This document shows positions 1,631 to 63,378 of a stretch of DNA of 64,000 nucleotides, in pieces. Within the stretch, counting starts at the first letter, position 1; every line of letters begins with the position of its first letter. Source of the DNA: Octopus sinensis. Taxonomy: Eukaryota. The notes under the pieces were generated by a model, which worked only from the letters and a program-made list of their open reading frames with translations, was not told where the DNA came from and made no database searches. Location of the stretch: assembly GCF_006345805.1 (NCBI RefSeq), contig NC_043005.1:39990001-40054000 (forward strand), read 5' to 3'. Both the position numbers and the translations under genes were made by a program.

Positions 1631-1779
1631 CAAATAAATGGATAAGTATTGGAGGTGTTTCTGGAAGTCCCATTCGTTTTACCTTGGAAGAAATAGGTGG
1701 AAAACCAGGCGTGAACCATACCTATGACTATCATTCATTTTTTGCAAGTATTCAAGACAATTCAGAGACTGTTTTTGAG
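1631..1779 (+). CDS. Exon 1 (phase 1-0): NKWISIGGVSGSPIRFTLEEIGGKPGVNHTYDYHSFFASIQDNSETVFE
   Basis: tatttttcag acceptor, GTAAGT donor, 149 nt open; joins exon 2 to give VFESPKGIVC. Confidence 0.88.
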
Positions 1780-4555: not shown

Positions 4556-4614
<59 letters not shown>

Positions 4615-4822
4615 GTGTTTATGTGTCTGTGTTTGTCCCCCCCCCCAACATCGCTTGACAACCAATGCTGGTGTGTTTATGTCCCCTTAACTTAGAGGTT
4701 CAACAATAGAGACCAATAGAATAAGTACTAGGCTTACAAAGTATAAGTCCTGCAGTCGATTTGCATGGCCACAGTCAAATGACTGAAACAAGTATACGAG
4801 TAAAAGAGTAAAGAGTGTATAT

Positions 4823-4875
<53 letters not shown>

Positions 4876-5075
4876 GTGTTTATGTGTCTGTGTTTGTCCC
4901 CCCCCCCAACATCGCTTGACAACCAATGCTGGTGTGTTTATGTCCCCTTAACTTAGAGGTTCAACAATAGAGACCAATAGAATAAGTACTAGGCTTACAA
5001 AGTATAAGTCCTGCAGTCGATTTGCATGGCCACAGTCAAATGACTGAAACAAGTATACGAGTAAAAGAGTAAAGA

Positions 5076-5113
<38 letters not shown>

Positions 5114-6622: not shown

Positions 6623-6668
<46 letters not shown>

Positions 6669-9600
6669 CTTTAACCTCATCATCAGAACATCACCCCCTC
6701 TGCTAAAATTATATTTTTAACTCTCCTCCTCTACCCTCAACTAACTTTTTTAACCTTGTAATAAATATTACGTTCCCCCTACCTCACATCATGGACGCTT
6801 CTCTTTCCCTCTTTTGCTTTCTCCTTTTTCTGTCTCACTCTTTGCCTTTGCCTCTTTTTCTCTCTCCTTTTTTCTTTTTCCTCTCTTTCTCTTCAACTAA
6901 TCACATGAAAGTGTTACAATTACATTCCCGCTACCTCATATCATGGACACTTCTCTCTCCCTCTTTTTCTCCCTTTCTCTTTTCTTCTCTCCCTCTTTCC
7001 TTTCTCCCTCTTTTTCTCTAATCACATGAAAGCATTACTGATGGGCTAAGTAACACAATGACAAGCTGAATTATTATAATATGTACACATTATAAAGAGA
7101 AAAACAATTAGTTTTAAATCTCTGAGTGAGAAATATGTAGTAACAGTTCTGTATAGTAAAGTCTGTTTGCCAACGTAAAACGGCAGTCCTGCTTAGGACG
7201 ATGTTACTATTGTTTAGCCCCAGGAAAACATCTTTTCCAGCTGACTACCAACACATCATCTGTGTCTGTATACAGTGAGCAAGGGAGTTAATGCTCCCCC
7301 TCCAACCTTAGTGTTATCTGCAGACCAATGGCTCCTGGGTTATTTTCCTTCCTCAGCACAGGACAATCGCTGGCTAGGAATAGCAGCCACTTGACCGCAC
7401 TCACAATATATACTTTGAAAGTGACACACAGTCACTGACCTTGTAAAGAGAAAAACAGCTAGTTTTAAATCTCTGAGTGAGAAATATGTAGTAACAGAAC
7501 TGCATAATAAAGTCTATTTACCAACGTAAAGATGATGTGTTAATAGCCAACTGGAAAAGATGTTTTCCCAGGGCTAAACAGTAGTAATATCATCCTAAAC
7601 AGGACTACCACTTTACGTTGACAAATAGACTTTACTATGCAGTTCTGTTACTACATATTTCTTGCGCAGAGATTTAAAACTAGTCGTTTTTCTCTTTATG
7701 AAGTCAGTGATTATGTGTCACTTTCAAAGTATATATCGTGAGTGCAGTCAAGTGGCTGCAATCTCTAGCCAGCAATTGTTCTGCACCAAGGAAGAGAAAT
7801 AACCCAGAAGCCATTGGTCTGCAGGTGTCACTAAGGTTGGAGGGGCAACATTAACTCCCTTGCTCACAGTATACGGACACAGATGATGTGTTGGTAGTCA
7901 GCTGGAAAAGATGTTTTCCTGGGACTAAACAGTAGTAACATCGTCCTAAGCAGGACTGCCACTTTGCATTGGCAAAAAGACGTTAATACACATTATAATA
8001 AATACAAAAATACATTAGAATATGAATTTAAGGAATTATTCAGAAATTAATTTGAAATTTTTAATTATATTTCAGTCACCAAAAGGAATTGTATGCAAAG
8101 ATAGAAAAAGTAACATGAGCCTTCCAGATCTGCCACCAACAATTTCAGCAAGCATTGAGCTTACATCTGAGTCTCAAGTAAAAATTGTTGATGTAAGTAT
8201 TGTGATTCTAGTATTTTCCTTTTTATATATACATATCAAAACAATTTGATCTAATACAATTTAATCAGGGCTGAATTAAGACCATAGAGGCTCTAAGTAC
8301 TTAAAATATTTTGGTACCCATCCTCATATATATGTATATAATTAAAAATGTAAACAACAATAAATCATAAAATAAACTTTTATTTTTCAAAATGAAACAA
8401 AACTAACCGTAAGATGGAAAATAATGCTTATCATTTGTATATTTCCACTTAATTTATACCTGAAAAATTTTCTCCAGCTTTTTTTTTATTGCAAAGTCTT
8501 TGACTAGATCCTCACTGTGATGTCATGAACACTTCAAAATTACATTTCCAATAATATGAACCACTTTAACCCTTTACTGTTCGCATTATTCTACCAAAAT
8601 TAAGGTTTTTTCATCCACATTGCCTTGAACTAATCAGGCGTTACCTTGTAGCTTTGAGATTTTGATGAGGTAGCTGTCAATTTTTAAAACGATATTGTAG
8701 GGTTGGTGTGAGAGACCAGATCTGGCCATTTTGAAAATAAAACAGGGAGAATACTTATGGCCGGATATGGCCGGTTTAAATGCTAAAGGGTTAAATATTA
8801 TTTTAGTAAGTTTAAAGAATTTCTTTTGTGCTGTAAACTATTTAACATTGCTGTGGTGCTCTCTCTTTTCCCTTGATGCCCTAAGCACGTTTTATTTTGC
8901 TTAATAGTTAGTCCAGCACTGAATTTAATGCTTGGCTTCCACGCTTGCTTCTTGGTTACAGTTCCTGGGATATGCTTATTAATGATTATACACTTTAAAG
9001 AATATGTGCTTTGAAACTCTTCACTATATTTTTGTCAGGCAAAATCATTATGCAGTAACAATTATTTATTAAATACTTGTATTAAATACCATATTCAAAA
9101 AAGTAAGGAACAAATAAAACATATTGAAAAATTAAAGCCTGAAGTTATAAAACCAGCCAAATCAGGCTACCTTGGAGAAACAAAATTAAAGAAAGAAATT
9201 ATGGAAGAATAATTACATGACTAAAATTTCATTTGATTGTATAAATCTAATACTTGATTCATAATTAATTTTATTGACCTAAGAAGGGTGAAAGTTGACT
9301 CTGGAAGGATTTGAACTTAGAATGTAAAAATGCATAATAACACTATCATTTCAAAGTGCAATGGACAAAACTGCAGGATAACTGTAGCCTATCTGAGAAT
9401 AAGCTCTACAACATGGAATGATTGCTACAGTGAGTGTTGCTAGCCATTTTCTATGGCAATGCCATTGTGATCATGTCCATGAGGCATGGCTGAACATGCC
9501 ATTTGCTTTGTGATGTACAATCATTAATCCCTCCCACCATCTTCTACTGTTTAATCCCCCTTCTCCCTGAATGAAGACTCATATTTAAGCTAAAATAAAG

Positions 9601-11334: not shown

Positions 11335-11373
<39 letters not shown>

Positions 11374-12538: not shown

Positions 12539-12569
<31 letters not shown>

Positions 12570-15500
12570 CACACACACATATATACGAAGGGCTTCTTTC
12601 AGTTTCCGTCTACCAAATCCACTCACAAGGCTTTGGTCGGCCCAAGGCTATAGTAGAAGACACTTGCCCAAGGTGCCATGCAGTGGGAATGAACCCAGAA
12701 TCATGTGGTTGGTAAGCAAACTACTTACCACACAGTCACTCCGCACCTAGTGTAATGTTAGTTATATTTCTTATCTTAACTTTCAGTGCAATTTCTTAAA
12801 TGCATATATTAGTGCCCAGAATACTTTATTAAGAGAAATGTTAAAATAAACATAAAAGAATTTAAAGAATAAAATGATTTATTTCATCATTTAGAAGATA
12901 AGCTATTATATATAATAGTGGCACGTAAAAGCCACCATCCAACTGTGGCCGTTTGCCAGCCCTGTCTGGCACCTGTGCTGGTAGCACGTAAAAAGCACCC
13001 ACTACACTCACGGAGTGGTTGGCGTTAGGAAGGGCATCCAGCCATAGAAACATTGCCAGAGCAGACTAGGCCTGGTGCAGCCTTCTGGCTTCCCAGACCC
13101 CAGTTGAACCGTCCAACCCATGCTAGCATGGAAAGCGGATGCTAAATGATGATGAAGATAATGATGATGATATATATATATATCCAATAACATTTCACGG
13201 TGAATATTAAATGAGAATAGCTAAATAAAAAGTTTTGACAAAAAAAAATTTTTATGGAAACTTTGAAATTGTTAAATATTGAAGTGAAATTGATGGAACT
13301 TACTAGTTGTCTGATCTTGATACTAGTGTTGTCACCTAAATGTTCTGAGACAAAGAGCCTCAAGCATCCAAATAATTTACGATAGAAACTTTCCTTATCC
13401 AAACAAAACAAATGGAGCATTTTACACCACGAGCAATAATTCTCCATATCAACTGATAATAACAGACGTATCTTTTATCTTTTACTTGTTTCAGTCATTA
13501 GACTGTGGCCATGCTGGAGCATCTCCTTTTTGAGCATGTATTTCTGTGAGTCAAAATGTGTTTATACAATTTTGTATATATGAAATTTTTCACTGAGTAG
13601 TTTTTAAATGAGGAAACTTTTTTCTTTTACTTATTTCACACTGTTTGGTATTATGTTTTTATATTATCCACAGGTCTACTATAGTAAATCAGATCAATTA
13701 TTGAAAATTGACTATCAGCCTGGAGGCAATGAGGATAGCCCTCATCCAGAGTTTGTGAACACAATATCAGAAATAGATGATTATAAAGCAGGTTTGCTTA
13801 CTTCTATATTTTTCTTTGTTATTTCACAAGTTATAACTATTACGATATTTTGTTTAGACAAGCTTCTTGCAAACTTTCTTTCTCTAACAAAACTGCATTA
13901 AAAAAATATTAATCCTTATTGCTCAAAAAAATAGTTCATAAACTTAAGAGTGGGATAAGTTAATTGCATTAAATTTATAATGGATGGTTACGATAAGCAA
14001 AAAGGATATGCAATTTTAGCATAAACAATTCATTTTATCTGAAGAGTTGGATCAATATTCAGTGAAGCTCAAGCATTTGAACGTTCATATGCTAAAGAGA
14101 GGAATTTGGGGATTGGCCTCTCTTCTGGGTGGTTAAATGTCAGTCTACTGGAATTATAAAATCAGTTTTATAGGTGTTTAGGTAGAGGTCAATGCAAAGT
14201 TTGCATGTCATGCAATTAATGAGCAAGAAAGAATTCAATGCAAACACTCAAAGAAGAAAACGTTTAGAAGCAATATAATTCATTTGATTATAATTTTTTT
14301 GCTGCTATTGTTTAGCAGATGCTGTCTAGGTGTTACCATGCAGTACTGTCTGCACTGATCTTAAACCTCCCCTTTTTCCTCTTTTCTTCTGTCAACGGTG
14401 CTGTTTCTGTGTAAATTTACAGTCAATGTCTGGATTTTTCAGGCTTTTATGTCGATGGAACAGATTCCTCTATACACCAGTTGAGTATCCCAAATGTTGA
14501 TATCAGTCCAGGTACTGCAAATACATTGTGGGATATTGTCTTGTTGTAAGAGGAAAGCTCTGACTGCTAGATCTTCTAAGTCTAATATAGTATACTTTGG
14601 TTACTCAGTCCTTATTTAGAGTACCTTTGAAAGGTACATTCTTATCAAAATCTGCATATTTGTAGTAACTGCTTTAGTGAATGGGGGAAATATAGAAACA
14701 ATTGATACAAAGGTTCAGGGATTGGGAAATAAATTTTCTATGTTCAGCTGTTAATTTTACATAAACATATTGTTCTTCTAATTCCCTCATTGTTCAACTT
14801 GTAAAAAATTACCAAGTGTAATTTATTCACTCTAACATGTACAATGACTATGTAATATGGATGGATTTGGTTATTATTAGAGAGAAAGTCTTGTGAGTAT
14901 GATGCACTGGTTCTTTGGTGTGATGGTTCAAAATTTTGTTTCGGGACTGGTCACACACACACATACACACACAAATATGCACATGTACACACACACACAT
15001 ACACACACTCACATGCCCCTGCACATGCACACATGTGCATATGCACATACACAGGCATACATGCAATATTATTGTCAATATATAAATTAAGGCATCATAA
15101 ATTAAAGGCGGCGAGCTGGCAGAATCGTTAGCATGCCGGGCGAAATGCGTAGCCGTATTTCGTCTGCCGTTACGTTCTGAGTTCAAATTCCGCCGAGGTC
15201 GACTTTGCCTTTCATCCTTTCGGGGTCGATAAATTAAGTACCAGTTATGCACTGGAGTCGATGTAATCGACTTAATCCGTTTGTCTGTCCTTGTTTATCC
15301 CCTCTGTGTTTAGCCCCTTGTGGGTAGTAAAGAAATATATATAAATTAAGGCATCATTACTAATAGCTTCATGATAAAGTTAATAAACCAAGCCAAACAT
15401 CAGACAATATAAGAACAACAAACTTCTATGAAATCATCCAAACTCCTACACTGACTATCAGTATGGGATCAAAGAACTGGCAGAAAGGTGGCTTCAGACC

Positions 15501-23632: not shown

Positions 23633-23675
<43 letters not shown>

Positions 23676-42401: not shown

Positions 42402-42442
<41 letters not shown>

Positions 42443-43598: not shown

Positions 43599-43643
<45 letters not shown>

Positions 43644-43654
43644 CATTATTATTA

Positions 43655-43710
<56 letters not shown>

Positions 43711-49391: not shown

Positions 49392-49424
<33 letters not shown>

Positions 49425-51240: not shown

Positions 51241-51287
<47 letters not shown>

Positions 51288-54133: not shown

Positions 54134-54165
<32 letters not shown>

Positions 54166-57100
54166 GGTGATAGTGGACATTCCACATACTAAGAGCAATG
54201 GTTTTCTCTTCCATCAAAATACTATAAAAAATTTGTTAGTACTTTTCATTTCTACACTTTTTTTCCTATTTCCAAGATATTAATTGCCAAATAAAAATAC
54301 ATTTAATTTTTTTTTTTTCATTAACCTTAAATTATAGGAACAACACTTCACAGCTGTATCTATGTTAAGCGACATTGATCGGTCAAACTCAAGAAGTGTT
54401 TCTTCTGGTAAGTTCATTTTGTCATATATTTTTACTTGGAATTCATCTATTTTCAGCAAATTATCCCACTTTCAATATTGCTTTTAGCTTTTAATCCTTT
54501 AATTGTACTTGTTTACCACTTGCAATATAGGATAAGAAATGATCAAAGCCAGTGAGTTGTAAAAACTGCAGATGTAAATCATTTCTTTTTCTTTTTACTT
54601 CCTGAGTCTGGAGAAAGGGATGACCCTCTGGAATTGGTAAGATTGATTCTCTTAATGTGCCATACCTGCAGAGAAGACATGAGTAGGAAGGAGATTTTAG
54701 AGGGCCGATGTTCTTGGAATGAAGGATTTGACATAGTTGTTAGTGGACAAAGGGAGGGGTACTAAGAGGTGAGGTCAGGGGCCCCTGAGGGGTGAAGGTA
54801 TAAGACCAGCTAGCTCCAAGGAGTTGAGGTTATTTTAATCATGATAAAAAAAAAGGATAGAGAAAGAAAATATGTTTGTGGGCCAGAGATAGGGAGTTTT
54901 TCCATTAGCATAGATCATCAGCCTGCTGAGTGGACCTTTTCTGAATATGATTCGGTACGTCAGGAAGTATAATAATAGCAGTATCCCAGATGTGATCCCA
55001 CTTCAGCCTTATCATGATCTAATAAGTACATATCCTAAACAGGTCTATAAAGATTATCTCTCTACCCTTAAGCTGGTTAAATATAAGTGGAGGGATGAGC
55101 TGACTTTAAATCATTAATTATTCCCTTTAAAATAATCAACAATATAAGCAATGGTAATATGACTTTGACAAGAATAGGATGCTGTTGAACCTCTCTCTCT
55201 CTCTCCCTCTCTTTTTCTCAATGATTTGATACATTATTAATTGAGGTAAGACTAAATTATAGTTAACCCAGTTAGGGAATTAGTAAGCATACATGAACGA
55301 TTTACGTTTAGCTGTTTGCATTAATGGGTAATAAATATTCTTACAAATAGCAAAATTTCTGAATATATCCACTCTCATATCTCCAGGTTTTTATTCTTTT
55401 AAACTTTTATGCATTTCAGCTGTGGCCATGCTGGGGCACCATCTGTGTTATCACCTTTTTAATTGCCATTATTTTGTGATTGCTTGTGCTTGAAGAAAGG
55501 AGTTCAATATTGCTGCCTCTCATAAGTTTCTTGATATGATGTAGGTTCAGCTGAGGTGCTGTCATGTAGGTTCATCAGAGAGAATGCTTAGTCCAAATGA
55601 AAAGGACTTTTACTAAACAGTCAGTAAATGTCCCAATATAGCAGAATCTTAAAAATCCCCTTTTCCCAATCAATCGTTACCAATCATTTCTCTCATTCTA
55701 GACTGACATTCACAACCTTTATCACAATGCATGAAGCCCAAAACTACACCAATGTGAATTATAACTGATAGATATTTCTCTCTATAGTTTTAAACCAAAT
55801 CTAAAAACACAAAGTAATACACAATGTAAATTTGTTTTTGTGGCTTTACATAGAAGAGTTGACTATATCAATTTAAACTTGTGTTGCAGTTTTACTTTAT
55901 TAAATAAGGTTAAAGTAGAATTTGTATGCAATAAAATGTTTCTTGTTTAAAAATTTGATATGATTTAATTGGGTTGTTTAGTATTGTGGTAGTAATAATC
56001 TAATTTACTCAACCACTCTTATTTATGAGAAAAATAATCAGGCCGACCAAAGCCTTGTGAGTGGATTTGGTAGACGGAAACTGAAAGAAGCCCGTCGTAT
56101 ATATATATGTATGTGTGTGTGTTTGTCCCCCTAGCATTGCTTGATAACCGATGCTGGTGTGTTTATGTCCCCGTCACTTAGCGGTTCGGCAAAAGAGACC
56201 GATAGAATAAGTACTGGGCTTACAAAGAATAAGTCCCGGGGTCGACTTGCTCGACTAAAGGCGGTGCTCCAGCATGGCCACAGTCAACTGACTGAAACAA
56301 GTAAAAGAGTAAAAGAGTAAGAGTTAGTCTCAGTTATTTCAAAACAGGTTTGATGCAGCAGACAGGAAAAGTAGGATGGCGAACCTGACAACAATTAAGT
56401 ATATTTTCTGCTTTACCATCGTCATTCACTTAGCTTATTTTAAACTTGTTTGATTTAAAGTATATTGGAGCTCAAACATATTTTTAGTATTGGATCAACT
56501 TAAAACTCACAGTCATGAATAAAAGTCAAAGGTAGTGCTGTTAAATAGTACTATGAATAATCACTGAATTGGAATTGATAGCTTACAAGCTTTTAATATA
56601 GTGCCTTTGATAATGCAGAGTCCACAGCATATGCTACTTTTGCTGCTAGGTTAATCTGGCCCTATTTCTGCTTGCCACAAAAGGAAGAGTAGATTGTGTG
56701 ATGCTAGTGTACATAGGGCAATGCAGCATAGCAGTGAAAGATGGGCTGTTTGTAGTGAAACAAAGATGTTTGATGAATAGAATGAAACAAAGTAAACAGG
56801 TTGTGTTCTAGATGTGTAATGTCAGTGTGCATGAAGTACAAATGAAATGAGTGGAAAAAAACTGAGTATGAGAGACAAGTGACCATGACAAGGGGTAAGC
56901 TGTTGAAGAAAACTCAAGCAAGTGAAGAAAGATATATGCAAAAATAACTGATAACAGTGACAGGGTGGGGTGGAGGTAGTGATAGTATTGGTTCTCTCCT
57001 CTTCCTCTTCCTTTTCCTCCACCTGTGTCTACTTCATCTTCTTTGACTTCTTGTTATTCATAATAAGTTTAAAGGCTTGATAAATTATTTCTAAACTGTG

Positions 57101-58707
57101 GTTGTATTTTAAAAGCAATGTTTTATAATGTTTAATTTCCTCTGCATTTAAAATGCCTTTTTTTTATTATTTGATTTTTGGCTTGCATTAATAAAATTAT
57201 GTTTAATTCTAATTTACTGTTGTAGTTCAAAATATGAAGATGTTCACAAAGCTGAGTAAAAGTGGAACTTTGAAATCTAGTGGTCCTTTCTTTAAGCAGG
57301 TATCAGTGGATGATTGTGCTAACTTATGCATTAATAATAAAATATTAAATTGTGAAGCCTTCACTTATTGTTACCTGCGTGGTAGTTGTTTTTTGAGTGA
57401 TATACACCCAAATGATACCAATGTTCAAGCAACGGATGGTTGCAATATTTTTCAACGTAAGTTGTGATTTATTCTGTTCTTTTATTTCTGTTATTTATGT
57501 ACTGTAACTTCCTAAAAGATAAATTGATTAAAATGAAAAAAAAAAACATAAAAGTATAAAACAGGTCAGTCTTTTTATTTCTTTTTGCTAATTCATACTT
57601 TTTTTATTTTTTAAGTGAGATATATATATTGCTAATTCATACTTTTTTATTTTTTAAGTGAGATATATATATAGCAACTTTATATTTTCAGGGAATTATG
57701 TTAACATGTTTGATCAAATTCCGGGAAAGACATTTCCAATGAAAGGGGATGTATTGCCTGTCATTGCCCAGAGTGCTGATGTTTGTGCTAAAAGTTGTCT
57801 TGATAAGGGACTCAAATCATGCCAATCGTTTGAATACTGTCCCGCTAAAGAAGTATGTACTTTAAGTTCTCGACATGTAATGGATGTACCTTCAACAGAT
57901 ATTATCACCACAGAGACTTGTAACTTGTACACTGGTAAGTCTCTTTTTCTGGTCTCTATTTCATGAAGAATATACCATTTAATTATTGTTTGGTTCTGTC
58001 CTTCACTTTTTACTTAGATTAAGTTGTGTATATGGTTAAAACTAATTGCAAATAGGACATTAATGATCAAAGAAAAATATAGGAAACATCATTCAATCCT
58101 AAGATGCATTCTAGACTGAGATAAATATCTCAACACACATCTTTAAGGGAATAATTTGTCAGGAAACTTCTAATCCAAGTGACAAGAAAGAGTTGCTGTA
58201 ATAAACAGATAAACAGATAACAGAAGATTCTCATGCCAGATTCAGTCAGAAACTTTGCAGACATCAAGGGAATAATATTGTATATATATATATATATTCT
58301 TTCTTTACTTGTTTCAGTCATTTGACTGCGGCCATGCTGGAGCACCGCCTTTAATCGAGCAACTCGACCCCGGGACTTATTCTTTTGTAAGCCCAGTACT
58401 TATTCTATCGGTCTCTTTTGCCGAACCGCTAAGTAACGGAGACATAACCACACCAGCATCGGTTGTCAAGCAATGCTAGGAGGACAAACACAGACACAAA
58501 CACATACAGGCATATATATATATACATATATACGACGGGCTTCTTTCAGTTTCCGTCTACCAAATCCACTCACAAGGCTTTGGTCGGCCCGAGGCGATAG
58601 TAGAAGACACTTGCCCAAGGTGCCACACAGTGGGACTGAATCCGAAACCATGTGGTTGGTAAACAAGCTACCTACCACACAGCCACTCCTGCGTCTATGT
58701 ATATATA

Positions 58708-58738
<31 letters not shown>

Positions 58739-61700
58739 TTATATACACACAAGCATACATACATACAACATACATACATACATACATACATACATACATA
58801 CATACATACATACATGATAATGGCTGCTCCCTTGTTATTGAGTATGTCCATTACACAAGGCTTAACAGTTAACAGTGCTGTGATTGAATGTGACTTTTTA
58901 GCCCAGCTAAAGATCTACAATGTCTTGGACAGAATTGGCAGCTAAAACCTTTACTGGCAATAGCTGGCTGTAATAGTAATTGGGCTTCATGTACCTTTGC
59001 ATGTTTTTTAAGTCCTCATGCCAAATCACACTCCTTTCCACATGCCAGACAGATATGATTAGTATGGTGTGTAGCACCACCACCAGTGTCCTGGTAGTCA
59101 GTCATCGGTCTCGCTTTATGACTACAAAAATGAGCCCAGCTTTACTGAGGCAGGGTGTTGCACAGACATTGCATGTCAGCGTCATAGGAAGACCCTTACC
59201 GTCATGCACAACTCAAGATTTCTCAAAAGTAGCTGTCCCCTCATGCACAATCCTTCTGTACCAGCTATGGTCAGTAGCTATGCCCTCCCATGTGTCACCC
59301 ATACATATATACATACATACATACATACATACATACATACATACATACATACATAAGCATACAAATATACATCTAGACCCATTTATCAACGCACACATAC
59401 AGCGACAGATATAAGAATTTGGAGACACAGATAATAACTAATAGACATAAGTAAATGCAATACCAATTAAATATATTTATTACCCTTAGAAAGAATATAT
59501 ATTCATATATTTAAATATCATTGCTAATAATCATTGGAAATTTTGAAATGCTGTCACTTAAATATCTACATATATTTCCAGTTTCTCCTCTTCAACACTT
59601 TGTACATTCAACGACAAAGATGGAAAAGCTTAACAGTAATTTATTGGTAAAAAATATATCTCTAAAAGCATGTGCAAAGCTATGTATGGAAGATGAAGGA
59701 TTTGGTTGTATCAGCTTTAGTTATTGTCCAGTAACATCAATATGTCATATAACAGGAGCTAATCAAAAGACAATTAATATTGAAACAAATATTGTGGCAA
59801 ATTGTTCACATTATATAAGTAAGTATTTTGGTTTAAAATTATTTAAAGCCATATAATATTTTTTGTGTTTGTATACTGAAATGACAAAGGATCAAGCTAT
59901 CTGATGCTCAGCCATACCCAAGAAAACCCGTGCCCCACAGCAGAAGTATTAAGACTGATCCTTCTGGGTATGTAAAGCAACCATGGTGGTCCCATGTAAA
60001 AGTTCCCATGTGGTGCCATATAAAAGTGCCCATGCAGCAACACATAAAAACGCCCATGCAGCACCATGTAAAAGTGCCCACGTAGTGCCATGTAAAAGCA
60101 CAGTGCCACGTAAAAGTATCCAGCACACTCTGTAAAGTGCTTCCATGTCTACTATCACCAGTCACATCTTCAGTTGTCCTCCAGCTCATTTGTACCAGCC
60201 TGGAAGTGAAGCTAAGTTGATGGCCTTGTGAAGGAATTTCCCAAGAGATTAACAGAGAGTGTGCCCAAGCTATCTTAGATGTCTTATGAGTAGAGCTTGC
60301 TGCAGCAGGTTGATACAACAGCATCGTTGTAGTTCAGCAGTAGTGGTTGAAGACTTCAAGTTTTTAGAGATTTTCAGCTTTTGCTGGCCAAGACTTGCAC
60401 CCATAGAGAAAGGTGGTCTATATTTTCCCAGCACTCATCTAATCAGATATTTATTTATTCTCATTAGTTAACTATGAGAAAGGTGTTAAAATCAGTGAAA
60501 AATTCAGCTGAATTACTTAAATATGAACATGTGGAAAAGAAGACAAGCATATTGTCTCTATTGTCTATTTTAATGCATACATATTAGAGAGAGAGGGGGA
60601 GAGAGAGAGAGAGATGTTTGAATTGTATGCCTGCAAGATAAATCAGTAATCGACAAAAGTATTTTAGGGACCCCAGAAAATGTTTTACTTTATATGTATA
60701 TATTGGTATGTATTGCAAGAAACAGCTAGGTTTCTTTCTCCAACAGTTTATATAGTTCAGCCTACAAGTTAATGAGAAAAACAAAATACAAATTTTGAAA
60801 GAAATTTCTATAAAACTAGCTTCTAAACATCAAATGTCTATGGGTATCCACCAGAATAAAATAATAATCAAAGAGTCCATAGATAAAAAATGGTTGAGAA
60901 CCTCTGTTCTAGAATATAGCTTCTCACTTTTTACATGCCTTCCATAGTCCTCTTCTGATCATAGCTACATAACTTCACTAAAACCACCTCCAGAACTTCC
61001 AATATAAGTTATTCCTTGGGGGGTTTTTTTTCTAGAACATTTTCAGCATCAGATCAGTAAAGACTTTTGTGAAGATATTTTTGTACCAATTGTACAACAT
61101 TGAGCACACGTGTGTTCTTGTTTTTTATTGAGCCTTTAGAATTCACCTGAGGGAATTCTAACCTGAAACAAACTTCCTAAACTGAAATTGTCGATAGATT
61201 TTCAAATGCAAAAACATTCAGTTCTGTATTTGAACTTTTTGTAATCTTTGGGAACTGTGAAGAAGAGAAAATGATGAACCCTGACCAGTTCACTAAAGTC
61301 TTCTGTGAATTCACTGCTACATTGTTCTAAGATGACCTGAACTATTACAGATTTTTTTAGTTTCTTAGTGTCTTCCAAATTATAGAATGTAGAGCATCAA
61401 CAGCATCCTAGGTCAATTAATACAAAAATTTCATCCACTTAATGGATGCTATGAAAAATGTGAAACAAAGTCACAGGAGACAATTAAGAGAGGATCCATT
61501 AAAATTATATCCCCTGCTTCCCAAAAGGCCTAGGTGAGTTGGGATATCAACAAAAAACGTGATGGGATCAATGTGTGTGCAAGATTAATATGTGTGTAGT
61601 GGGATTGGAGAGGGAATTGGGCAAGTGCATATGCTTATGTATGTCTGTGTGTGTATGGTTTGCACACAGGCTGTGATGGTGGACAGACCAACAGTGGAGG

Positions 61701-62816
61701 TCCTAGTGTTTATGATCATAGTGGATCCCATAAATAAGCAGCAACATCTCACCCCTGCACTTTTAGTAGCTATCCATATGGAGAAAAACTTTTTTAAGAC
61801 AATTCTTTCTCTGCTAGGCATAGCCTGCACTTTCTGCTACTGTTAAAATAAGGTTGGCACTTACCCAGAATTCTCCACTTGATCTCGTATTCCATGGTGC
61901 TGTCCTTCAACAACTATATATGCCTAACCAGGTCTGCAACATTGTGTCCCTCTCCTGGATATTACACGAGGATTTATGGTTGGTAAATCTGGTCCTGAAA
62001 GGACCTTCTTTCACACCCACATACTTCTACATATTTGACTGTCTGTTGAGATTCTTTGATGATCCCTACATTAATAACTAGACTATATATATAAAGAGAG
62101 AATCATATCCATGTGTAGTTGGCATTTGAAGAACTCCGAAGATAACCAATAAGGAATTTATATAACTCCATCAATAATAATAATTAATAAGCAGTAGTGT
62201 GTACAAAGCTTCTGCAGAAATCTATATGTACACAAAATTCCTCACTAAACTTGTCAAATCTAACCTTGCTAAGCACCTTTGTACATAGCTTTACAGTTTC
62301 TTAAAGAGAGAAATTCATCTGTAGCTGGTGAGAAAATAAGGCATCATCACAGGTCTCCTCTGCATCAATGAATGCATAATTCTTTAGTAATTATCTCACT
62401 TGAAATGTATTATCACTTTTTGCTTTGTGCAAGTAAAATTGCATAAAAATAAATCTAAGTGGATTGTGAAATTTTCTTTTCTCTTTTATTTATGAAACAT
62501 TGTTATAAAAGCTCACAAACTAAAGTTTAACTTATCAACATCTTAAACATGACAATTAACATTCTTTTTTTATTGAAAGGACTTGATCCACCTACTCCAG
62601 TGGCTTCAAAGACGGTTGAAAAAAGTGGAAACAAAGGTAATATACACTTAATTAAAATTATAAATCTAGACTAATGGTGATAAAATACTAATATATATAT
62701 ATGCGTACCTATGTATGTGTATATGTATATGTGTATGCATAAATATGCTTTGTGTATGTTTAGGTATTTATATGTGTGTGTGTATATGTGTAAACATGTG
62801 TATGCATGTGTGTGTG

Positions 62817-62847
<31 letters not shown>

Positions 62848-63378
62848 ATGTATATATAGACACACACATATACTACACACACGTATGCACAAAGAGACAT
62901 GTACCCAAAGAGATACACACATTACGTACATATGTACATACATATGTACATACATACGTACGTACATACATACATCATACATACATACATACATACATAC
63001 ATACATACATACATACATACATACATACATACATACATACATACATACATACATACATACATAAGCATACAGTCATACATACTCATATATGTATGAATGT
63101 ATGTATCTATGCATGCAAGCATGTATGTATCTGTGCGTGAATACCATATATGTATGGTGTAACTGTGCTTCTCTCTACATCTTTTTTCTATGCATTTACA
63201 TTTTATTTTGTTCTTTGATTTTCTTATATTAACAGGTAAACTTGTTGCCCTTGGCATTGGTACATTTATACTTGGATGTCTGCTGGGATTGATCACAATC
63301 TTTTTAATTCACAAGAATGCTTGTACTATGAAAGACGATCCAATGAAAGTAAATTTTTATAAACTGGACAAAATGTAA
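1631..63378 (+). CDS. 25-exon gene (5' end outside window): single-pass membrane protein with tandem EPDR/LolA-like repeats, SEA-like modules and 4 PAN/apple-like domains
   Basis: Seen: 25 exons with pyrimidine-rich AG acceptors and GT donors whose phases chain without a break; sum 3245 nt = 2 + 1081 codons ending TAA at 63376-63378; many N-x-S/T sequons; hydrophobic C-terminal helix. Domain names are inference from motifs. Confidence 0.88.
3560..4100 (-). mobile_element. Highly decayed RTE-like LINE fragment
   Basis: Interrupted - strand translation resembles the RTE post-RT region (TTLL...FHRL...HWQE.I.N); boundaries approximate. Confidence 0.35.
4399..4817 (+). mobile_element. tRNA-derived SINE family A (internal (TA)n/(TG)n, GAGTAAAA tail)
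   Basis: Head GGCGCAGGAGTGGCTGTGTG...GGTTCAGTCCC; same body at 12315, 31171, 49229, 56041, 58296. Confidence 0.9.
4605..5078. repeat. Exact tandem duplication of the SINE-A 3' half (period 261 bp)
   Basis: 4605-4817 matches 4866-5078 including private variants; bounded by (TA)n. Confidence 0.92.
5927..6154 (+). mobile_element. piggyBac-like MITE
   Basis: TTAA-CCCT...AGGG-TTAA ends; TTAA target and CCC/GGG termini are established piggyBac hallmarks. Confidence 0.75.
7084..7998. repeat. Fold-back element built from a ~350-bp unit, flanked by 12-bp direct repeat TACACATTATAA
   Basis: 7094-7530 forward (1.25 units), 7531-7981 inverted; direct repeats at 7084-7095 and 7987-7998. Confidence 0.85.
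8076..8192 (+). CDS. Exon 2 (0-0): SPKGIVCKDRKSNMSLPDLPPTISASIELTSESQVKIVD
   Basis: ttatatttcag acceptor, GTAAGT donor, 117 nt; inside ORF 8022-8249. Confidence 0.92.
8566..8794 (-). mobile_element. piggyBac-like MITE, same family as 5927-6154, opposite orientation
   Basis: TTAACCCT...AGGGTTAA; end ggtttaaatgctaaagggttaa is the reverse complement of the start of the 5927 copy. Confidence 0.75.
10020..10500 (-). mobile_element. Gypsy-type LTR retrotransposon integrase remnant
   Basis: ORF 10093-10380 FLERGP..LLTDNRTVF...RWNIRHFFTAAYRPSGNATV matches the retroviral-type DDE integrase core (D-N-x-x-x-F, YxPxGN). Confidence 0.8.
11315..11560 (-). mobile_element. RTE 3'-end fragment (family C) with (GAT)n tail
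   Basis: (CAT)n then ttaac..gcatgg..ggatgcccttcc. Confidence 0.65.
11786..12012 (-). mobile_element. SINE family B, full length, CpG-decayed
   Basis: Reverse complement of the 15106 copy; ~17-bp TSD ctaac(t/a)ctaatggttag. Confidence 0.88.
12315..12748 (-). mobile_element. SINE family A
   Basis: Reverse complement of the 4399-type element. Confidence 0.88.
12916..13170 (+). mobile_element. RTE 3'-end fragment (family C)
   Basis: GTAAAAAGCACC modules, GGAAGGGCATCC motif, CCATGCTAGCATGG palindrome, (GAT)n tail. Confidence 0.75.
13674..13791 (+). CDS. Exon 3 (0-1): VYYSKSDQLLKIDYQPGGNEDSPHPEFVNTISEIDDYKA
   Basis: tattatccacag acceptor, GTTTGC donor, 118 nt; inside ORF 13608-13901. Confidence 0.9.
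15106..15336 (+). mobile_element. SINE family B, young CpG-rich copy
   Basis: 21-bp TSD atatataaattaaggcatcat at 15078-15098 and 15337-15357. Confidence 0.92.
15939..16114 (+). CDS. Exon 4 (1-0): GIRYLQDSVLGNCSTSKIKNTSLADGKQMLGDTTSYEGYIIRNIMQSFIQKKDFEYVGL
   Basis: tttactttaaag acceptor, GTAAGC donor, 176 nt. Confidence 0.92.
16361..16468 (+). CDS. Exon 5 (0-0): RTIRNIDCFVFAAHKNQFMLQDGSPDSATYEIYLSS
   Basis: tttttccttccag acceptor, GTGAGT donor, 108 nt. Confidence 0.92.
18561..19030 (+). mobile_element. SINE family A, diverged
   Basis: Same head, body and tail order as the 4399 copy with many substitutions. Confidence 0.75.
19130..19460 (+). mobile_element. RTE 3'-end fragment (family C) with expanded (GAT)/(GAA)/(GGA) tail
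   Basis: AAAAAGCAC modules, GGAAGGGCATCC, ttaaatgatgatg. Confidence 0.7.
19763..19843 (+). CDS. Exon 6 (0-0): SDWTVLPDRSGQTFANYPVMVNIALDT
   Basis: ttatatttttag acceptor, GTAAAT donor, 81 nt. Confidence 0.88.
20258..20477 (+). mobile_element. mariner-derived MITE
   Basis: TIRs TACAAGGGGGTGCTG..AAGTTCCTGGCTTT / AAAGCTAGGAATTTTCCAGCACCCCCTTGT; interior keeps the end of a mariner ORF. Confidence 0.8.
20524..20638 (+). CDS. Exon 7 (0-1): AELSYQLSFIDFSDQQQEVDVSTCYDASKKMHISILLS
   Basis: ttcatttatag acceptor, GTAAGT donor, 115 nt; DVSTC parallels DVSPC of exon 16. Confidence 0.9.
21530..23580 (-). mobile_element. RTE-clade LINE remnant (RT region plus 3'UTR) containing an inverted duplication
   Basis: GKTPGPSG (23279 ORF), LGSVLTPLLFIIV (22940 ORF), PWELLYADN near 22900, RIGWRKFKGLLPLLATKG (22315 ORF); ends in family-C tail. 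Confidence 0.9.
22428..22759. repeat. 133-bp inverted repeat with 66-bp spacer
   Basis: 22428-22560 is the reverse complement of 22627-22759 with one mismatch; ORFs 22315(-) and 22627(+) share their first 44 aa. Confidence 0.95.
23890..24478 (+). mobile_element. Two adjacent diverged SINE-A copies (3' half at 23890-24110; near-complete at 24126-24478)
   Basis: Family-A body and tail motifs present twice. Confidence 0.7.
24617..24778 (+). CDS. Exon 8 (1-1): GNYIKSTKEVIETIGRAMIRKLVGIDALQIQNVQLSYDANLMYLYASILDNAPE
   Basis: tttcgttaaag acceptor, GTAAGT donor, 162 nt; paralogous to exon 17. Confidence 0.9.
24940..25330 (-). mobile_element. RTE 3'-end fragment (family C) with 27-bp duplication at 25194-25247
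   Basis: (CAT)n, ggatgcccttcc, gtgcttttta modules; gcaggccagtcctcctcgccaggggat x2. Confidence 0.7.
26130..26660 (+). mobile_element. mariner transposase pseudogene (internally deleted)
   Basis: MLWQVYGDEAMGHMQCFE*HRCFKSRRMSLKDDEQSGRPAT (mariner HTH-like) then NILKHLREDIQQERQDLW (catalytic-domain piece). Confidence 0.85.
27404..27501 (+). CDS. Exon 9 (1-0): GTQGQVSSLQYAFQTLRSAIAQREFIFTVNVGN
   Basis: gctaatttcag acceptor, GTAAGT donor, 98 nt. Confidence 0.88.
28200..29330 (-). mobile_element. Non-LTR (RTE/RTEX-like) reverse transcriptase remnant
   Basis: FIDFSKAFDLIHR, QGDILAPFLF, YADN near 28880, and GSFTWKLTKKFETKLDGT in ORF 28457. Confidence 0.85.
31171..31576 (-). mobile_element. SINE family A, young
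   Basis: Near-consensus copy with most CpGs intact. Confidence 0.92.
31791..31833 (+). CDS. Exon 10 (0-1): IQAEYIGLHVRLDA
   Basis: tattacacag acceptor, GTAAAT donor, 43 nt; needed to keep phase between exons 9 and 11. Confidence 0.78.
31934..32031 (+). CDS. Exon 11 (1-0): GKLHKPSLPNFDDDFQYQSEIVTPSKNHMELVK
   Basis: gtatttattaag acceptor, GTGAGT donor, 98 nt; P-x-LP...F/I-x3-E pattern shared with exon 2. Confidence 0.85.
32254..32494 (-). mobile_element. tRNA-derived SINE family D
   Basis: Reverse complement head GTGGAGGTGCGTGGCTTAGTGGTTAGG...GGTTTCGATTCC, then TTCTTGAGCAAAACAC..CCACTCAGCTG core. Confidence 0.8.
35383..35454. repeat. 18-bp minisatellite x4 (aattaataaaaggaaaat)
   Basis: Four perfect units ending 37 nt before the exon 12 acceptor. 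Confidence 0.95.
35492..35597 (+). CDS. Exon 12 (0-1): IFYDKTKNLSRFDVNQEHCSNLCTGPSEVIQDFTR
   Basis: ttttcatttag acceptor, GTAAGT donor, 106 nt; paralogous to exon 3. Confidence 0.9.
35840..36605 (-). mobile_element. maT/DD37D-type Tc1/mariner transposase remnant
   Basis: VSSEDDIMLLHVFEQGLGLNSDSYVK..VVKPCL and, across a frameshift, WPPNSPDCNPVDY...EAEGGYFK*; WPPxSPDxNPxDY is typical of DD37D. Confidence 0.82.
36749..36888 (+). CDS. Exon 13 (1-0): GVSYVIEKSKGSCQIQPLFQAFDVSQSRMESGAQLFYFDNTYKYVGQ
   Basis: cttatttaaag acceptor, GTAAGT donor, 140 nt; paralogous to exon 4. Confidence 0.92.
37380..37665 (-). mobile_element. SINE with family-D head and a different body
   Basis: ttttgctcaagaacacaatgc..ccctaaccact head shared with the 32254 copy. 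Confidence 0.65.
38205..39910 (-). mobile_element. RTE-clade LINE, 5'-truncated, continuous from RT to (GAT)n tail
   Basis: GSALCPFLFIIVLL, PWELLYADD at 39650-39680, ORFs 39009 (SFCYLGD..KGRLYDACV) and 38753 (RPRKTWDEV..DRDLWR), then modular 3'UTR. Confidence 0.93.
40298..40384 (+). CDS. Exon 14 (0-0): QHIRGILTNIFESHVAAFQNNLFRFYFLD
   Basis: ctctcttttatag acceptor, GTAAGT donor, 87 nt; paralogous to exon 5. Confidence 0.9.
40693..40913 (-). mobile_element. mariner-derived MITE, same family as 20258
   Basis: Same TIR core AAAGTTCCTGGCTTT; reverse complement interior LEKLKNCCNKCVNLRGEYVE is a mariner C-terminus. Confidence 0.8.
41067..41126 (+). CDS. Exon 15 (0-0): ENWSGSPFFVPVKLEMVSDS
   Basis: tttctttatag acceptor, GTAAGT donor, 60 nt; W...P-V pattern parallels exon 6. 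Confidence 0.85.
41255..41890 (-). mobile_element. Decayed RTE 3' fragment
   Basis: Shares gcacactgacatt..catccag and gaagctatcgactgc pieces with the 38205-39910 element. Confidence 0.55.
42186..42395 (+). mobile_element. SINE family B with (TTA)n tail
   Basis: Family-B core; tail runs into the (TTA)n at 42396-42442. Confidence 0.8.
42443..43600. repeat. Two identical 559-bp elements in tandem (42443-43001, 43042-43600) embedded in (TTA)n
   Basis: Period 599 bp; no differences seen by eye; each copy bounded by (TTA)n. Confidence 0.95.
43711..43925 (+). mobile_element. SINE family B with (TTA)n tail
   Basis: Family-B head and core. Confidence 0.8.
44688..44956 (+). mobile_element. 5'-truncated SINE with T-rich tail and 15-bp TSD
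   Basis: TSD tactggttttattgc at 44673-44687 and 44957-44971; core gagcaaggcactttatttcac..cactcagctg, also seen near 30130-30190. Confidence 0.8.
45172..45295 (+). CDS. Exon 16 (0-1): DRFYRTDNYFEFLDDILMSTFDVSPCYRENNKITDLQITFK
   Basis: catatatttcag acceptor, GTAAAA donor, 124 nt. Confidence 0.88.
45483..45742. mobile_element. Solo LTR (260 bp)
   Basis: TGTGG...CCACA termini, 5-bp TSD GTCTC (45478-45482, 45743-45747), 14 CpGs. Confidence 0.8.
46118..46282 (+). CDS. Exon 17 (1-1): GAYKQRSINFITAAINKIMQFTHLPFINLQNPELSYDEDKTYLRISLIDPSPQPI
   Basis: atctttttcag acceptor, GTAAAT donor, 165 nt. Confidence 0.9.
46428..46760 (+). mobile_element. SINE with family-A head and alternative 3' body
   Basis: ggcatagctgtgtg..aagtagtttgcttcccaac..caaagccttgtgagtg head; body differs from other A copies. 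Confidence 0.6.
47671..47880 (+). CDS. Exon 18 (1-1), PAN/apple-like domain 1: GLFTVKPNLKPNPNQKPETQLKIQTPNECASSCIKSNCKAFAYCKGKKVCQVFSESPSSNQDSDDCNLYT
   Basis: ctatttctgcag acceptor, GTAAGT donor, 210 nt; C-x3-C / C-x2-F-x-Y-C / C / C pattern. Confidence 0.93.
48115..48530 (-). mobile_element. SINE-B dimer (full copy plus 5'-truncated copy) under one 11-bp TSD
   Basis: TSD atatcacttct at 48104-48114 and 48532-48542; junction at 48298/48299. Confidence 0.85.
48804..49020 (+). mobile_element. SINE family B
   Basis: Family-B head and core. Confidence 0.8.
49229..49630 (+). mobile_element. SINE family A, young
   Basis: Near-consensus. Confidence 0.92.
49771..49982 (+). mobile_element. SINE family B
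   Basis: 15-bp TSD atattattcaaggaa (49753-49767, 49983-49997). Confidence 0.85.
50159..50265 (+). CDS. Exon 19 (1-0): KTKEQKSNSLSSKQVIRDLDSLIQSGTFKISFTVDT
   Basis: tttttattgacag acceptor, GTAATA donor, 107 nt; paralogous to exon 9. Confidence 0.85.
51290..51600 (-). mobile_element. RTE LINE C-terminal fragment with zinc-finger-like motif
   Basis: KRNRKK...FNCSHCGRVCLSCIGLVSHECAC matches the RTE ORF terminus (CxxCGRxCxSxIGLxSH). Confidence 0.75.
52100..52420 (-). mobile_element. Possible very decayed non-LTR RT remnant (R4/Dong-like motifs)
   Basis: AYDMISFSLI and TQGTFSPL..QSHLL loosely resemble KAYDMVPH / FQGDSLSPL / ISHLL. Confidence 0.3.
54338..54407 (+). CDS. Exon 20 (0-1): EQHFTAVSMLSDIDRSNSRSVSS
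   Basis: ccttaaattatag acceptor, GTAAGT donor, 70 nt; keeps phase between exons 19 and 21. Confidence 0.8.
54600..55050 (-). mobile_element. CR1-group LINE 3' remnant
   Basis: Interrupted frame DHIWDTA..HIQKR..LSLAHK..SLELAGLIP resembles CR1/Zenon C-termini. Confidence 0.45.
56041..56322 (+). mobile_element. SINE family A, 5'-truncated, young
   Basis: Begins at ggccgaccaaagcc; near-consensus. Confidence 0.9.
57226..57456 (+). CDS. Exon 21 (1-1), PAN/apple-like domain 2: VQNMKMFTKLSKSGTLKSSGPFFKQVSVDDCANLCINNKILNCEAFTYCYLRGSCFLSDIHPNDTNVQATDGCNIFQ
   Basis: ttactgttgtag acceptor, GTAAGT donor, 231 nt. Confidence 0.94.
57587..57673. repeat. 44-bp tandem duplication just upstream of the exon 22 acceptor
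   Basis: gctaattcatac(T)6-7attttttaagtgagatatatatat x2. Confidence 0.92.
57692..57934 (+). CDS. Exon 22 (1-1), PAN/apple-like domain 3: RNYVNMFDQIPGKTFPMKGDVLPVIAQSADVCAKSCLDKGLKSCQSFEYCPAKEVCTLSSRHVMDVPSTDIITTETCNLYT
   Basis: tttatattttcag acceptor, GTAAGT donor, 243 nt. Confidence 0.94.
58296..58695 (-). mobile_element. SINE family A, young
   Basis: Full-length reverse copy, roughly 90-95% identical to the 56041 copy by eye. Confidence 0.92.
59582..59818 (+). CDS. Exon 23 (1-1), PAN/apple-like domain 4: VSPLQHFVHSTTKMEKLNSNLLVKNISLKACAKLCMEDEGFGCISFSYCPVTSICHITGANQKTINIETNIVANCSHYI
   Basis: catatatttccag acceptor, GTAAGT donor, 237 nt. Confidence 0.94.
59975..60430. mobile_element. Family-C modular repeats (+, 59975-60140) joined to a decayed RTEX-like fragment (-)
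   Basis: Six ~20-bp (c)atgtaaaag(t/c)gc units, then cagcacactctgtaaagtg; second part weak. Confidence 0.5.
62580..62636 (+). CDS. Exon 24 (1-1), stalk: RLDPPTPVASKTVEKSGNK
   Basis: tttttattgaaag acceptor, GTAATA donor, 57 nt; P/T/S-rich juxtamembrane linker. Confidence 0.82.
62690..63140. repeat. Compound (TA)/(TG)/(CA)/(TACA)n microsatellite filling most of the last intron
   Basis: Direct inspection. Confidence 0.95.
63236..63378 (+). CDS. Exon 25 (last): TM helix and tail GKLVALGIGTFILGCLLGLITIFLIHKNACTMKDDPMKVNFYKLDKM*
   Basis: cttatattaacag acceptor; about 22-aa hydrophobic stretch followed by basic HK; TAA. Confidence 0.93.

Follow-up and report, generated by a model that had tools for sequence, protein, structure and literature searches.

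Does the LolA/EPDR fold of animals, which to our knowledge has so far been seen only in small soluble proteins of still debated function, also occur in large membrane-anchored proteins? The question is raised by a stretch of 64,000 nucleotides from Octopus sinensis (CM016867.1 of GCA_006345805.1, positions 39,990,001-40,054,000, + strand; hereafter the window), for which an initial annotation, made from the letters alone, had proposed a membrane-anchored protein with tandem ependymin/LolA-like repeats, SEA-like modules and four PAN domains. We found that the gene in the window is LOC115215790 of O. sinensis, whose public model (P0001, 1085 amino acids (aa)) is named "uncharacterized protein", and that it is a mis-modelled new member of a catalogued, unstudied family, Pfam PF25898 (LolA_2nd_metazoa). 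The family is already catalogued in Pfam, so that the gene is not of a new kind; it is nevertheless worth study. In addition to the small soluble proteins, marine invertebrates (molluscs, brachiopods, annelids, echinoderms and amphioxus) have membrane-anchored proteins in which two to six copies of the fold are combined with recognition modules.

The clearest open exon pieces, used as a query, retrieved P0001 and one distant full-length relative, P0002 from the snail Babylonia areolata. P0001 aligned with the window in 25 coding exon blocks on the + strand at 100% identity. At all 24 introns exactly one GT-AG pair reproduced P0001, and the spliced coding sequence translated into residues 5-1085 followed by the stop codon, so that the 25-exon gene proposed earlier holds. 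The TAA stop ends at base 63378, and base 1631 is the first base past a splice acceptor (ttttcag, followed by CA). Exon 1 of the window begins at this acceptor and so cannot be the first exon of the gene, which spans more than 66 kb, extends further upstream and has its 25 3'-most coding exons in the window. The model of Octopus vulgaris (P0003) is 99% identical to P0001 over about 1000 shared aa, with 7 differences, all conservative. Rfam detected no RNA genes in the window.

A gene model of this kind could result from the fusion, by the annotation pipeline, of at least two neighbouring genes, one EPDR-like and one encoding the PAN domains and the transmembrane helix. Indeed, a 2018 survey took models with multiple ependymin domains as probable mis-predictions (PMC6280359). 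However, an orthologue of 1351 aa (P0153), judged squid-like from its similarity to the octopus protein, shares about 40% identity with the latter and is collinear with it from the first LolA-like domain (A domain) to the tail. Its open reading frame (ORF) of 4056 nt runs uninterrupted on contigs of 5.1-5.2 kb, which were assembled from several sequencing runs and are taken here as transcripts. Since one uninterrupted ORF on such contigs corresponds to an Octopus gene of more than 66 kb, a fusion of genes is very unlikely. The whole architecture was present on single uninterrupted ORFs of transcript-sized contigs from 32 collection blocks (the contigs listed each came from a different run), it recurs in proteins of scallop, chiton, Littorina and Babylonia, and the intron phases are compatible throughout. 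The fused-gene artefact was rejected on the transcript evidence, and the exons belong to one transcript, as had been supposed, rather than to separate ones. The analysis shows the gene structure, the single-transcript architecture (in a related species), the domain folds, the internal duplication and the family membership, and we regard the anatomy of this protein as established with high confidence.

Two complete repeats of B-type LolA-like domains were identified, R1 (residues 62-293) and R2 (residues 393-599). Each taken together with the first half of its following alpha/beta module, they share 21% identity over 277 aa (BLASTP E 4e-13), and a hidden Markov model (HMM) built from other species only scored 194.8 bits with R1 and 145.0 bits with R2. 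The motifs that the initial annotation had described were present in both repeats (LP near the start, VYY/IFY, D(Y/F)xxGxxY...GxC, (F/Y)xYVGxxxIRxI, W...PV and DVSxC), except that the spacer ahead of GxC, given as seven residues, is six residues long. The tail of a third repeat was also recovered: residues 1-61 represent the C-terminal tail of a different subtype, designated A-type (27.6 bits, HMM positions 160-227 of 227, with the alignment covering P0001 residues 3-66), and A-type domains end in F-x-(S/T)-P-x-G-(V/I)-x-C. The intron phases run 0,1,0,0,0,1,1,0,1 in exons 2-10 and again in exons 11-17, 19 and 20; therefore, a nine-exon unit composed of a LolA-like domain and an alpha/beta module was duplicated in tandem. 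An all-against-all BLASTP of + strand ORFs, aimed at the repeats, yielded mostly transposon and low-complexity matches, the repeats being too divergent for BLAST with pieces of exon size.

The fold of these repeats was assessed with an AlphaFold2 model of R1 and the module that follows (residues 62-395), based on an alignment of 24 sequences. The model had a mean predicted local distance difference test score (pLDDT) of 81.1 and a predicted template modelling score of 0.80, and contained 11 strands and a central helix (107-121), followed by a beta-alpha-beta-beta-alpha-beta unit. Foldseek comparison with PDB returned 57 matches at E<=1e-3, and the best 50 of them were all LolA-fold proteins (50 of 50, probability 1.0), with E values of 1e-7 to 1e-5 for the EPD-BCP1, LolA and EPDR1 matches. 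Sponge EPD-BCP1 (8i34, E 2.6e-7), LolA (9c89) and human EPDR1 (6e7o, with target template modelling scores (TM-scores) of 0.66-0.69) were at the top, and further matches included frog and mouse EPDR, RseB, VioE, LppX and LprG. The model thus confirmed that the repeats are predicted to adopt the open half-barrel of the LolA/EPDR fold, as the initial annotation had anticipated. The same fold superfamily includes bacterial LolA/LolB, LppX/LprG and RseB, carriers or sensors of acyl chains and glycolipids; these differ from the Octopus protein in being periplasmic or lipoproteins with a single domain, and have no detectable sequence similarity to its repeats.

If the fold is that of EPDR proteins, the gene might be a true ependymin-family member, a paralogue of EPDR1 with the same function but in tandem and membrane-anchored form. 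EPDR structures were among the best Foldseek matches: the half-barrel with a helix on its concave side is common to the Octopus repeats and to vertebrate EPDR1 and fish ependymins (PF00811; 6e7o, 6e8n, 6jld, 6jl9), at a target TM-score of at most 0.69. Like EPDR1, the Octopus protein probably belongs to the secretory pathway, and its conserved Cys pairs may, as in EPDR1, be of the disulfide type. Human EPDR1 contains a near-universal EPDR pair, C113/C210, which connects strand beta6 to the C-terminal loop (PMC6363788). The invariant pair of the repeats, GxC...DVSxC (Cys145/278 in R1 and Cys474/583 in R2), occupies equivalent sequence positions, a correspondence that we regard as a lead from sequence comparison. 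The A-type ending also resembles the C-terminal motif of EPDR, and in a minority of relatives the Pfam Ependymin profile gave sub-threshold matches (best 22.3, 19.8, 16.4 and 14.3 bits, E 1e-4 to 0.05), which in several of them lie on the D-x-x-G...C region. However, no match reached the gathering cut-off of 32.3 bits, and neither R1 nor R2 was matched by this profile (PF00811). Profiles of A-type (21 domains; alignments A1 and A4) and B-type (24 domains; alignment A2) sequences did not retrieve a single EPDR or LolA chain, EPDR1 included, from PDB sequences at E<=10. Pfam places the repeat in a separate entry, PF25898, and tandem domains with a transmembrane helix contrast with the secreted, single-domain EPDRs (PMC6363788). 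EPDR1 is a soluble homodimer of chains of about 200 aa, whereas the Octopus protein has three tandem domains along with other modules, is membrane-anchored and shows no significant sequence match to EPDR1. We therefore consider true ependymin membership unlikely. Of the earlier description of the repeats as ependymin/LolA-like, the fold stands and the assignment to ependymins by sequence does not; as the profile matches with PDB chains were due to chance only, "ependymin family member by sequence" was rejected.

Each of the two B-type repeats is followed by an alpha/beta module. The modules had been placed in exons 8-9 and called SEA-like, and this extent was too narrow: module 1 begins late in exon 7 and continues to exon 10, and module 2 is encoded by the last part of exon 16 together with exons 17, 19 and 20. 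Modelled alone, module 1 had a pLDDT of 87.7 and the order E6-14 H19-37 E44-52 E55-63 H77-89 E94-99 E102-114 of strands (E) and helices (H), so that the beta-alpha-beta-beta-alpha-beta topology of SEA domains was retained. Other SEA features were absent. Pfam SEA (PF01390) had no match at E<=1 on P0001 or P0002, nor at E<=10 on 19 module sequences; the G/SVVV self-cleavage motif was not found, the turns between strands 2 and 3 reading SYDANLMY and SYDEDKTY; and Foldseek of module 1 against solved structures gave no match at E<=1e-3 (best E 7e-3) and no SEA domain among the top 50. Its matches of best probability were the membrane-proximal domains of EpCAM/Trop2, SorCS2 and CELSR1 and designed ferredoxin folds. 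Domains of SEA, EpCAM/Trop2, SorCS2 and CELSR1 share with the modules a sandwich of about 110 aa, beta-alpha-beta-beta-alpha-beta in order, within a membrane-anchored ectodomain. As modelled, these modules are generic ferredoxin-like alpha/beta domains that are SEA-like in topology only.

An HMM built from the uninterrupted modules of short-form relatives aligned over its full length with P0001 residues 279-382 (E 1.3e-9). In the second module, it matched residues 588-651 (HMM positions 4-71) and, weakly, residues 732-762 (HMM positions 81-111), and between these two halves lies the first PAN domain (PAN1, residues 656-723), encoded by a phase 1-1 exon; a second HMM comparison gave the same pattern of matches. 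Module 1 of P0153 and of the scallop protein also contains a PAN domain, at the same point. Octopus intron 8 (window 24779-27403) is a phase 1 intron at the position of this nested exon, and a search of intron 8 for a decayed PAN exon revealed no relic. From this comparison, we infer that the nested PAN exon of module 1, which the squid-like and scallop proteins keep, was cleanly lost in Octopus. The locus is a clear example of domain shuffling, with a nine-exon unit duplicated with its phases kept, PAN domains on phase 1-1 exons, one of these exons nested in another domain and the matching exon apparently lost from the duplicated unit in Octopus.

The four PAN domains of the initial annotation were confirmed. 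Pfam PAN_1 (PF00024) matched P0001 in four stretches with 77.4 bits (cut-off 21.4, E 7.5e-22), and each domain has six Cys residues (within 682-719, 813-855, 891-936 and 971-1015). All four are encoded by one phase 1-1 exon each, and this set of four six-Cys PAN_1 domains on exons of their own is similar to that of plasma prekallikrein, factor XI and other PAN proteins. In contrast to prekallikrein and factor XI, the Octopus protein lacks a protease domain, is membrane-anchored and has one PAN domain nested in another domain. The predicted stalk and single transmembrane segment also held up: one hydrophobic helix is present at about 1040-1062, followed by a tail of 23 aa, and 19-residue hydropathy windows above 1.6 occurred only at 1039-1068. 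A C-terminal transmembrane helix was present in 123 of the 151 homologues of at least 500 aa, with a family pattern of the small-xxx-small type, (A/G)G(L/V)(A/G)xGM(L/I)xxG. Tails also carry recurring motifs, (D/E)xMxVxF(V/T/L)(N/K) in members of the PAN class (DDPMKVNFYK in Octopus) and G(I/F)(P/S)Yxxx(E/D) in short-form members. Conservation of the transmembrane pattern and of these motifs suggests a partner in the membrane or in the cytosol. A signal peptide is present in the orthologues P0003, P0153 and P0002, and we infer that the product of LOC115215790 is a single-pass type I membrane glycoprotein, its orientation in the membrane included.

Where, then, is the beginning of the gene? The start of the public model ("MNFA") is 4.5 kb further upstream than the first exon of the window and outside it. 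In an upstream exon (L001 9909-10013, about 2.9 kb upstream of window base 1), one frame encodes VSKEKNVIRGIPVNTFVANIVW and the next ELHNFKLTMNFA, and the first domain of the Babylonia protein aligns with each of these parts. Joined, they scored 49.4 bits against positions 129-227 of an A-type HMM built without Octopus sequence. As a consequence of a one-base frameshift between ...GIPVNTFVANIVW and ELHNFKLTMNFA, the public model begins with an internal Met, and little of the first LolA-like domain is included in it. Both P0003 and P0153 begin with a signal peptide and the N-terminal part of the A domain, which is complete in P0153. The public model of O. sinensis is thus truncated at the 5' end and needs correction. 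In P0003, window exon 21 (PAN2) and the upstream exon with the frameshift are missing, and 58 extra residues are present past the stop codon; these missing exons and the stop read-through are probably annotation errors.

The frameshift could also mean that O. sinensis has a pseudogene at this locus, or that its gene yields an N-terminally truncated product only. In favor of this, both frames of the upstream exon align to the A-type domain of relatives, the public model starts at an internal Met just past the shift, and the O. vulgaris model also omits this exon. However, all 25 downstream exons are open and have canonical splice sites, and the 7 differences from O. vulgaris over about 1000 aa are conservative. 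One-base errors in short G runs are a common artefact of long-read assembly. A damaged or truncated gene is, on this evidence, quite improbable.

The initial annotation had left room for an existing family entry. PF25898 is such an entry, and the family is large and widespread. It is listed on P0001, P0002 and P0153 without a 'weak' or 'faint' mark; this is a precomputed annotation without domain boundaries, and independent support comes from the HMMs built from other species. An exhaustive profile search of representatives of 50%-identity clusters detected at least 676 at E<=1e-3 and 95 at E<=1e-30. At odds with this result, a word-indexed protein search with the 24-sequence alignment A2 yielded nothing at E<=1e-5, which we take as a limit of the word index and not as evidence. 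Sampled members came from O. vulgaris, scallops, a chiton, a clam, abalones, a limpet, Littorina and Babylonia among molluscs, and from the brachiopod Lingula, the annelid Owenia, the starfish Patiria and amphioxus (Branchiostoma) outside them. Other carriers of PF25898 (Mizuhopecten LOC110457136, Babylonia LOC143294838 and O. vulgaris A0AA36B7T2) contain the same repeat family.

The common form of the family, about 620-680 aa, is composed of a signal peptide, an A domain, a B domain, an alpha/beta module and a transmembrane helix and has no PAN domain, whereas the long form, to which the Octopus protein belongs, has in addition a second B domain with its alpha/beta module and PAN domains. Most PF25898 members, at about 650 aa, are thus unlike the Octopus protein, whose public model is also without most of the first domain. 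In the scallop and squid-like orthologues, the order is that of Octopus: A and B LolA-like domains, alpha/beta modules, PAN domains and a transmembrane helix. Among relatives from metagenome or ENA sources, five or six LolA-like stretches were seen in each of two (P0055, with five domains resolved, and P0144) and six in a third (P0094); therefore, family members differ widely in how many copies of the fold they contain. In the 20 clusters looked up, member names were "uncharacterized", "hypothetical" or "Apple domain-containing", save two derived from domains: "DMBT1", a mis-naming of the amphioxus protein P0071 (Branchiostoma lanceolatum), and a glutamate-receptor-domain name on an Owenia protein that looks like a fused model. 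P0071 contains an SRCR domain where molluscan long forms carry PAN domains. Literature searches on PF25898, the locus names and ependymin together with PAN/apple revealed no description of this architecture. Neither these searches nor the 20 clusters contained a characterized member, in agreement with the initial annotation.

What could such a protein do? On balance, and with some confidence, we favor the view that this PF25898 protein is, as a whole, a membrane-anchored binder of hydrophobic ligands. Its outer part consists of an A-type LolA-like domain (with only the tail in the window), a B-type domain with its alpha/beta module, a second B-type domain with a module in which PAN1 is nested, three further PAN domains and a stalk. 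The half-barrels, located at the cell surface or in endosomes, would accommodate hydrophobic ligands (lipid, sterol or carotenoid-like), the PAN domains would fasten the protein to a glycan or protein partner, and the transmembrane helix and tail would link it to a sorting or signaling partner in or under the membrane. Ligand binding is proposed because lipids or carotenoids are bound by proteins of this fold whose structures have been solved. EPDR1, which possesses hydrophobic grooves, attaches to membranes containing anionic lipids (PMC6363788), and the heterodimer interface of EPD-BCP1 accommodates astaxanthin and mytiloxanthin (PMC10470211). The latter, the best structural match, is a LolA/EPDR-fold protein of a marine invertebrate with a known hydrophobic ligand (PMC10470211); it differs from the Octopus protein in being a secreted heterodimer of single-domain chains with carotenoids at the dimer interface, and the two share 11-16% identity. 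By analogy with these proteins, a role as a ligand-binding receptor can be proposed tentatively, at somewhat less than an even chance, and the lipid-scavenging or pattern-recognition system suggested by the initial annotation may likewise be considered. The ligand of PF25898 proteins, once found, would provide a direct handle on the LolA-like fold at animal cell surfaces.

Several points weigh against this view of the protein as a whole. The LolA fold is not confined to carriers, as is seen from VioE, an enzyme, and RseB, a regulator, and adhesion and matrix contraction are among the roles to which EPDR proteins have been linked. Moreover, the frameshift in the upstream exon of the O. sinensis assembly implies that this copy could be damaged. 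A signal peptide is absent from the window, and a search within 10 kb upstream of the gene-model start did not find the signal-peptide exons of O. vulgaris.

The most serious alternative is that of a surface protein for adhesion or matrix organization, in which the LolA-like domains and alpha/beta modules would be rigid protein-protein modules without a small hydrophobic ligand. PAN/apple domains are classic protein- and carbohydrate-binding modules, and the four present here would bind matrix or glycans. The alpha/beta module is most similar to membrane-proximal domains of the adhesion proteins EpCAM/Trop2, SorCS2 and CELSR1, the amphioxus relative has SRCR, another surface-recognition module, in place of PAN, and a variety of non-neural functions have been connected with EPDR proteins (PMC6280359). 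However, the most conserved part of the family is the pair of LolA-like domains, whereas the recognition modules are swapped or, in short forms of about 650 aa, absent. In addition, most solved members of the fold in the Foldseek list (LolA, LppX, LprG, EPDR1 and EPD-BCP1) bind or carry hydrophobic ligands, RseB and VioE being the exceptions. We therefore regard adhesion as a less probable function, although one with an appreciable chance, and prefer hydrophobic-ligand binding. A more specific form of ligand binding, which is doubtful in its entirety, is that the abutting A and B domains form an intramolecular pseudo-dimer similar to the EPDR1 homodimer or the EPD-BCP1 heterodimer, with a site for a hydrophobic ligand between the domains. 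PF25898 might then represent an unrecognized class of metazoan membrane-anchored lipid/carotenoid receptors, to which specificity modules (PAN, SRCR) would have been added by phase-1 exon shuffling, including insertion into the alpha/beta loop.

Table 1. Coding exons of LOC115215790 in the window, with P0001 residues and domain content
Exon	Window positions	Strand	P0001 residues	Content	Basis of assignment
1	1631..1779	+	5-54	C-terminal part of first, A-type LolA-like domain (R0)	
2	8076..8192	+	55-93	R0 end (...FESPKGIVC, to base 8096), then start of B-type R1 (SLPDLP...)	
3	13674..13791	+	94-133	R1 strands including VYY, start of D-Y-x-x-G motif	
4	15939..16114	+	133-191	R1: GNC (Cys145), central helix, FEYVG	
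5	16361..16468	+	192-227	R1: RTIRNI and next strands	
6	19763..19843	+	228-254	R1: W...PV strand	
7	20524..20638	+	255-293	R1 end (DVSTC, Cys278), then strand 1 of alpha/beta module 1	
8	24617..24778	+	293-347	Alpha/beta module 1: helix 1, strands 2-3; next intron phase 1	
9	27404..27501	+	347-379	Alpha/beta module 1: helix 2, strand 4	
10	31791..31833	+	380-394	Final strand of alpha/beta module 1	
11	31934..32031	+	394-426	Start of B-type repeat R2 (PSLPNF...)	
12	35492..35597	+	427-462	R2: IFY, D-F-x-x-G motif	
13	36749..36888	+	462-508	R2: GSC (Cys474), YKYVG	
14	40298..40384	+	509-537	R2: HIRGI and strands	
15	41067..41126	+	538-557	R2: W...PV strand	
16	45172..45295	+	558-599	R2 end (DVSPC, Cys583), then strand 1 of alpha/beta module 2	
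17	46118..46282	+	599-654	Alpha/beta module 2, first half: helix 1, strands 2-3	
18	47671..47880	+	654-724	PAN1, phase 1-1 exon, in strand 3-helix 2 loop of alpha/beta module 2	
19	50159..50265	+	724-759	Alpha/beta module 2, second half: helix 2, strand 4	Weak HMM matches (732-762) and orthologue alignment
20	54338..54407	+	760-783	End of alpha/beta module 2 and linker	
21	57226..57456	+	783-860	PAN2, phase 1-1 exon	
22	57692..57934	+	860-941	PAN3, phase 1-1 exon; best PAN_1 stretch (866-939)	
23	59582..59818	+	941-1020	PAN4, phase 1-1 exon	
24	62580..62636	+	1020-1039	Short Pro/Thr/Lys-rich juxtamembrane stalk	
25	63236..63378	+	1039-1085 and TAA	Transmembrane helix (ALGIGTFILGCLLGLITIFLI), predicted cytoplasmic tail of 23 aa with DDPMKVNFYK	

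Repetitive elements were also detected in the introns. Decayed transposon ORFs on the minus strand, with weak matches to integrase core (rve) and reverse transcriptase (RVT_1), occur at 10093-10380, 28931-29209, 23279-23698 and 39009-39443, and a short interspersed element is present in many copies (e.g., 4383-4690, 12284-12715, 31149-31610, 49216-49835 and 58276-58815). Tandem repeats were found at 4561-5110 (261 bp x 2.1, 99% identical) and 48115-48482 (184 bp x 2.0, 88% identical), and an (ATAC)n microsatellite occupies 62913-63082 in intron 24, about 150 bp upstream of the last exon. Finally, intron 15 contains a direct duplication at 42431-43629 with a spacing of 599 bp, in which the 300-nt copies are 100% identical and the ORFs of both copies are the same, followed by an (ATT)n run at 43600-43709.

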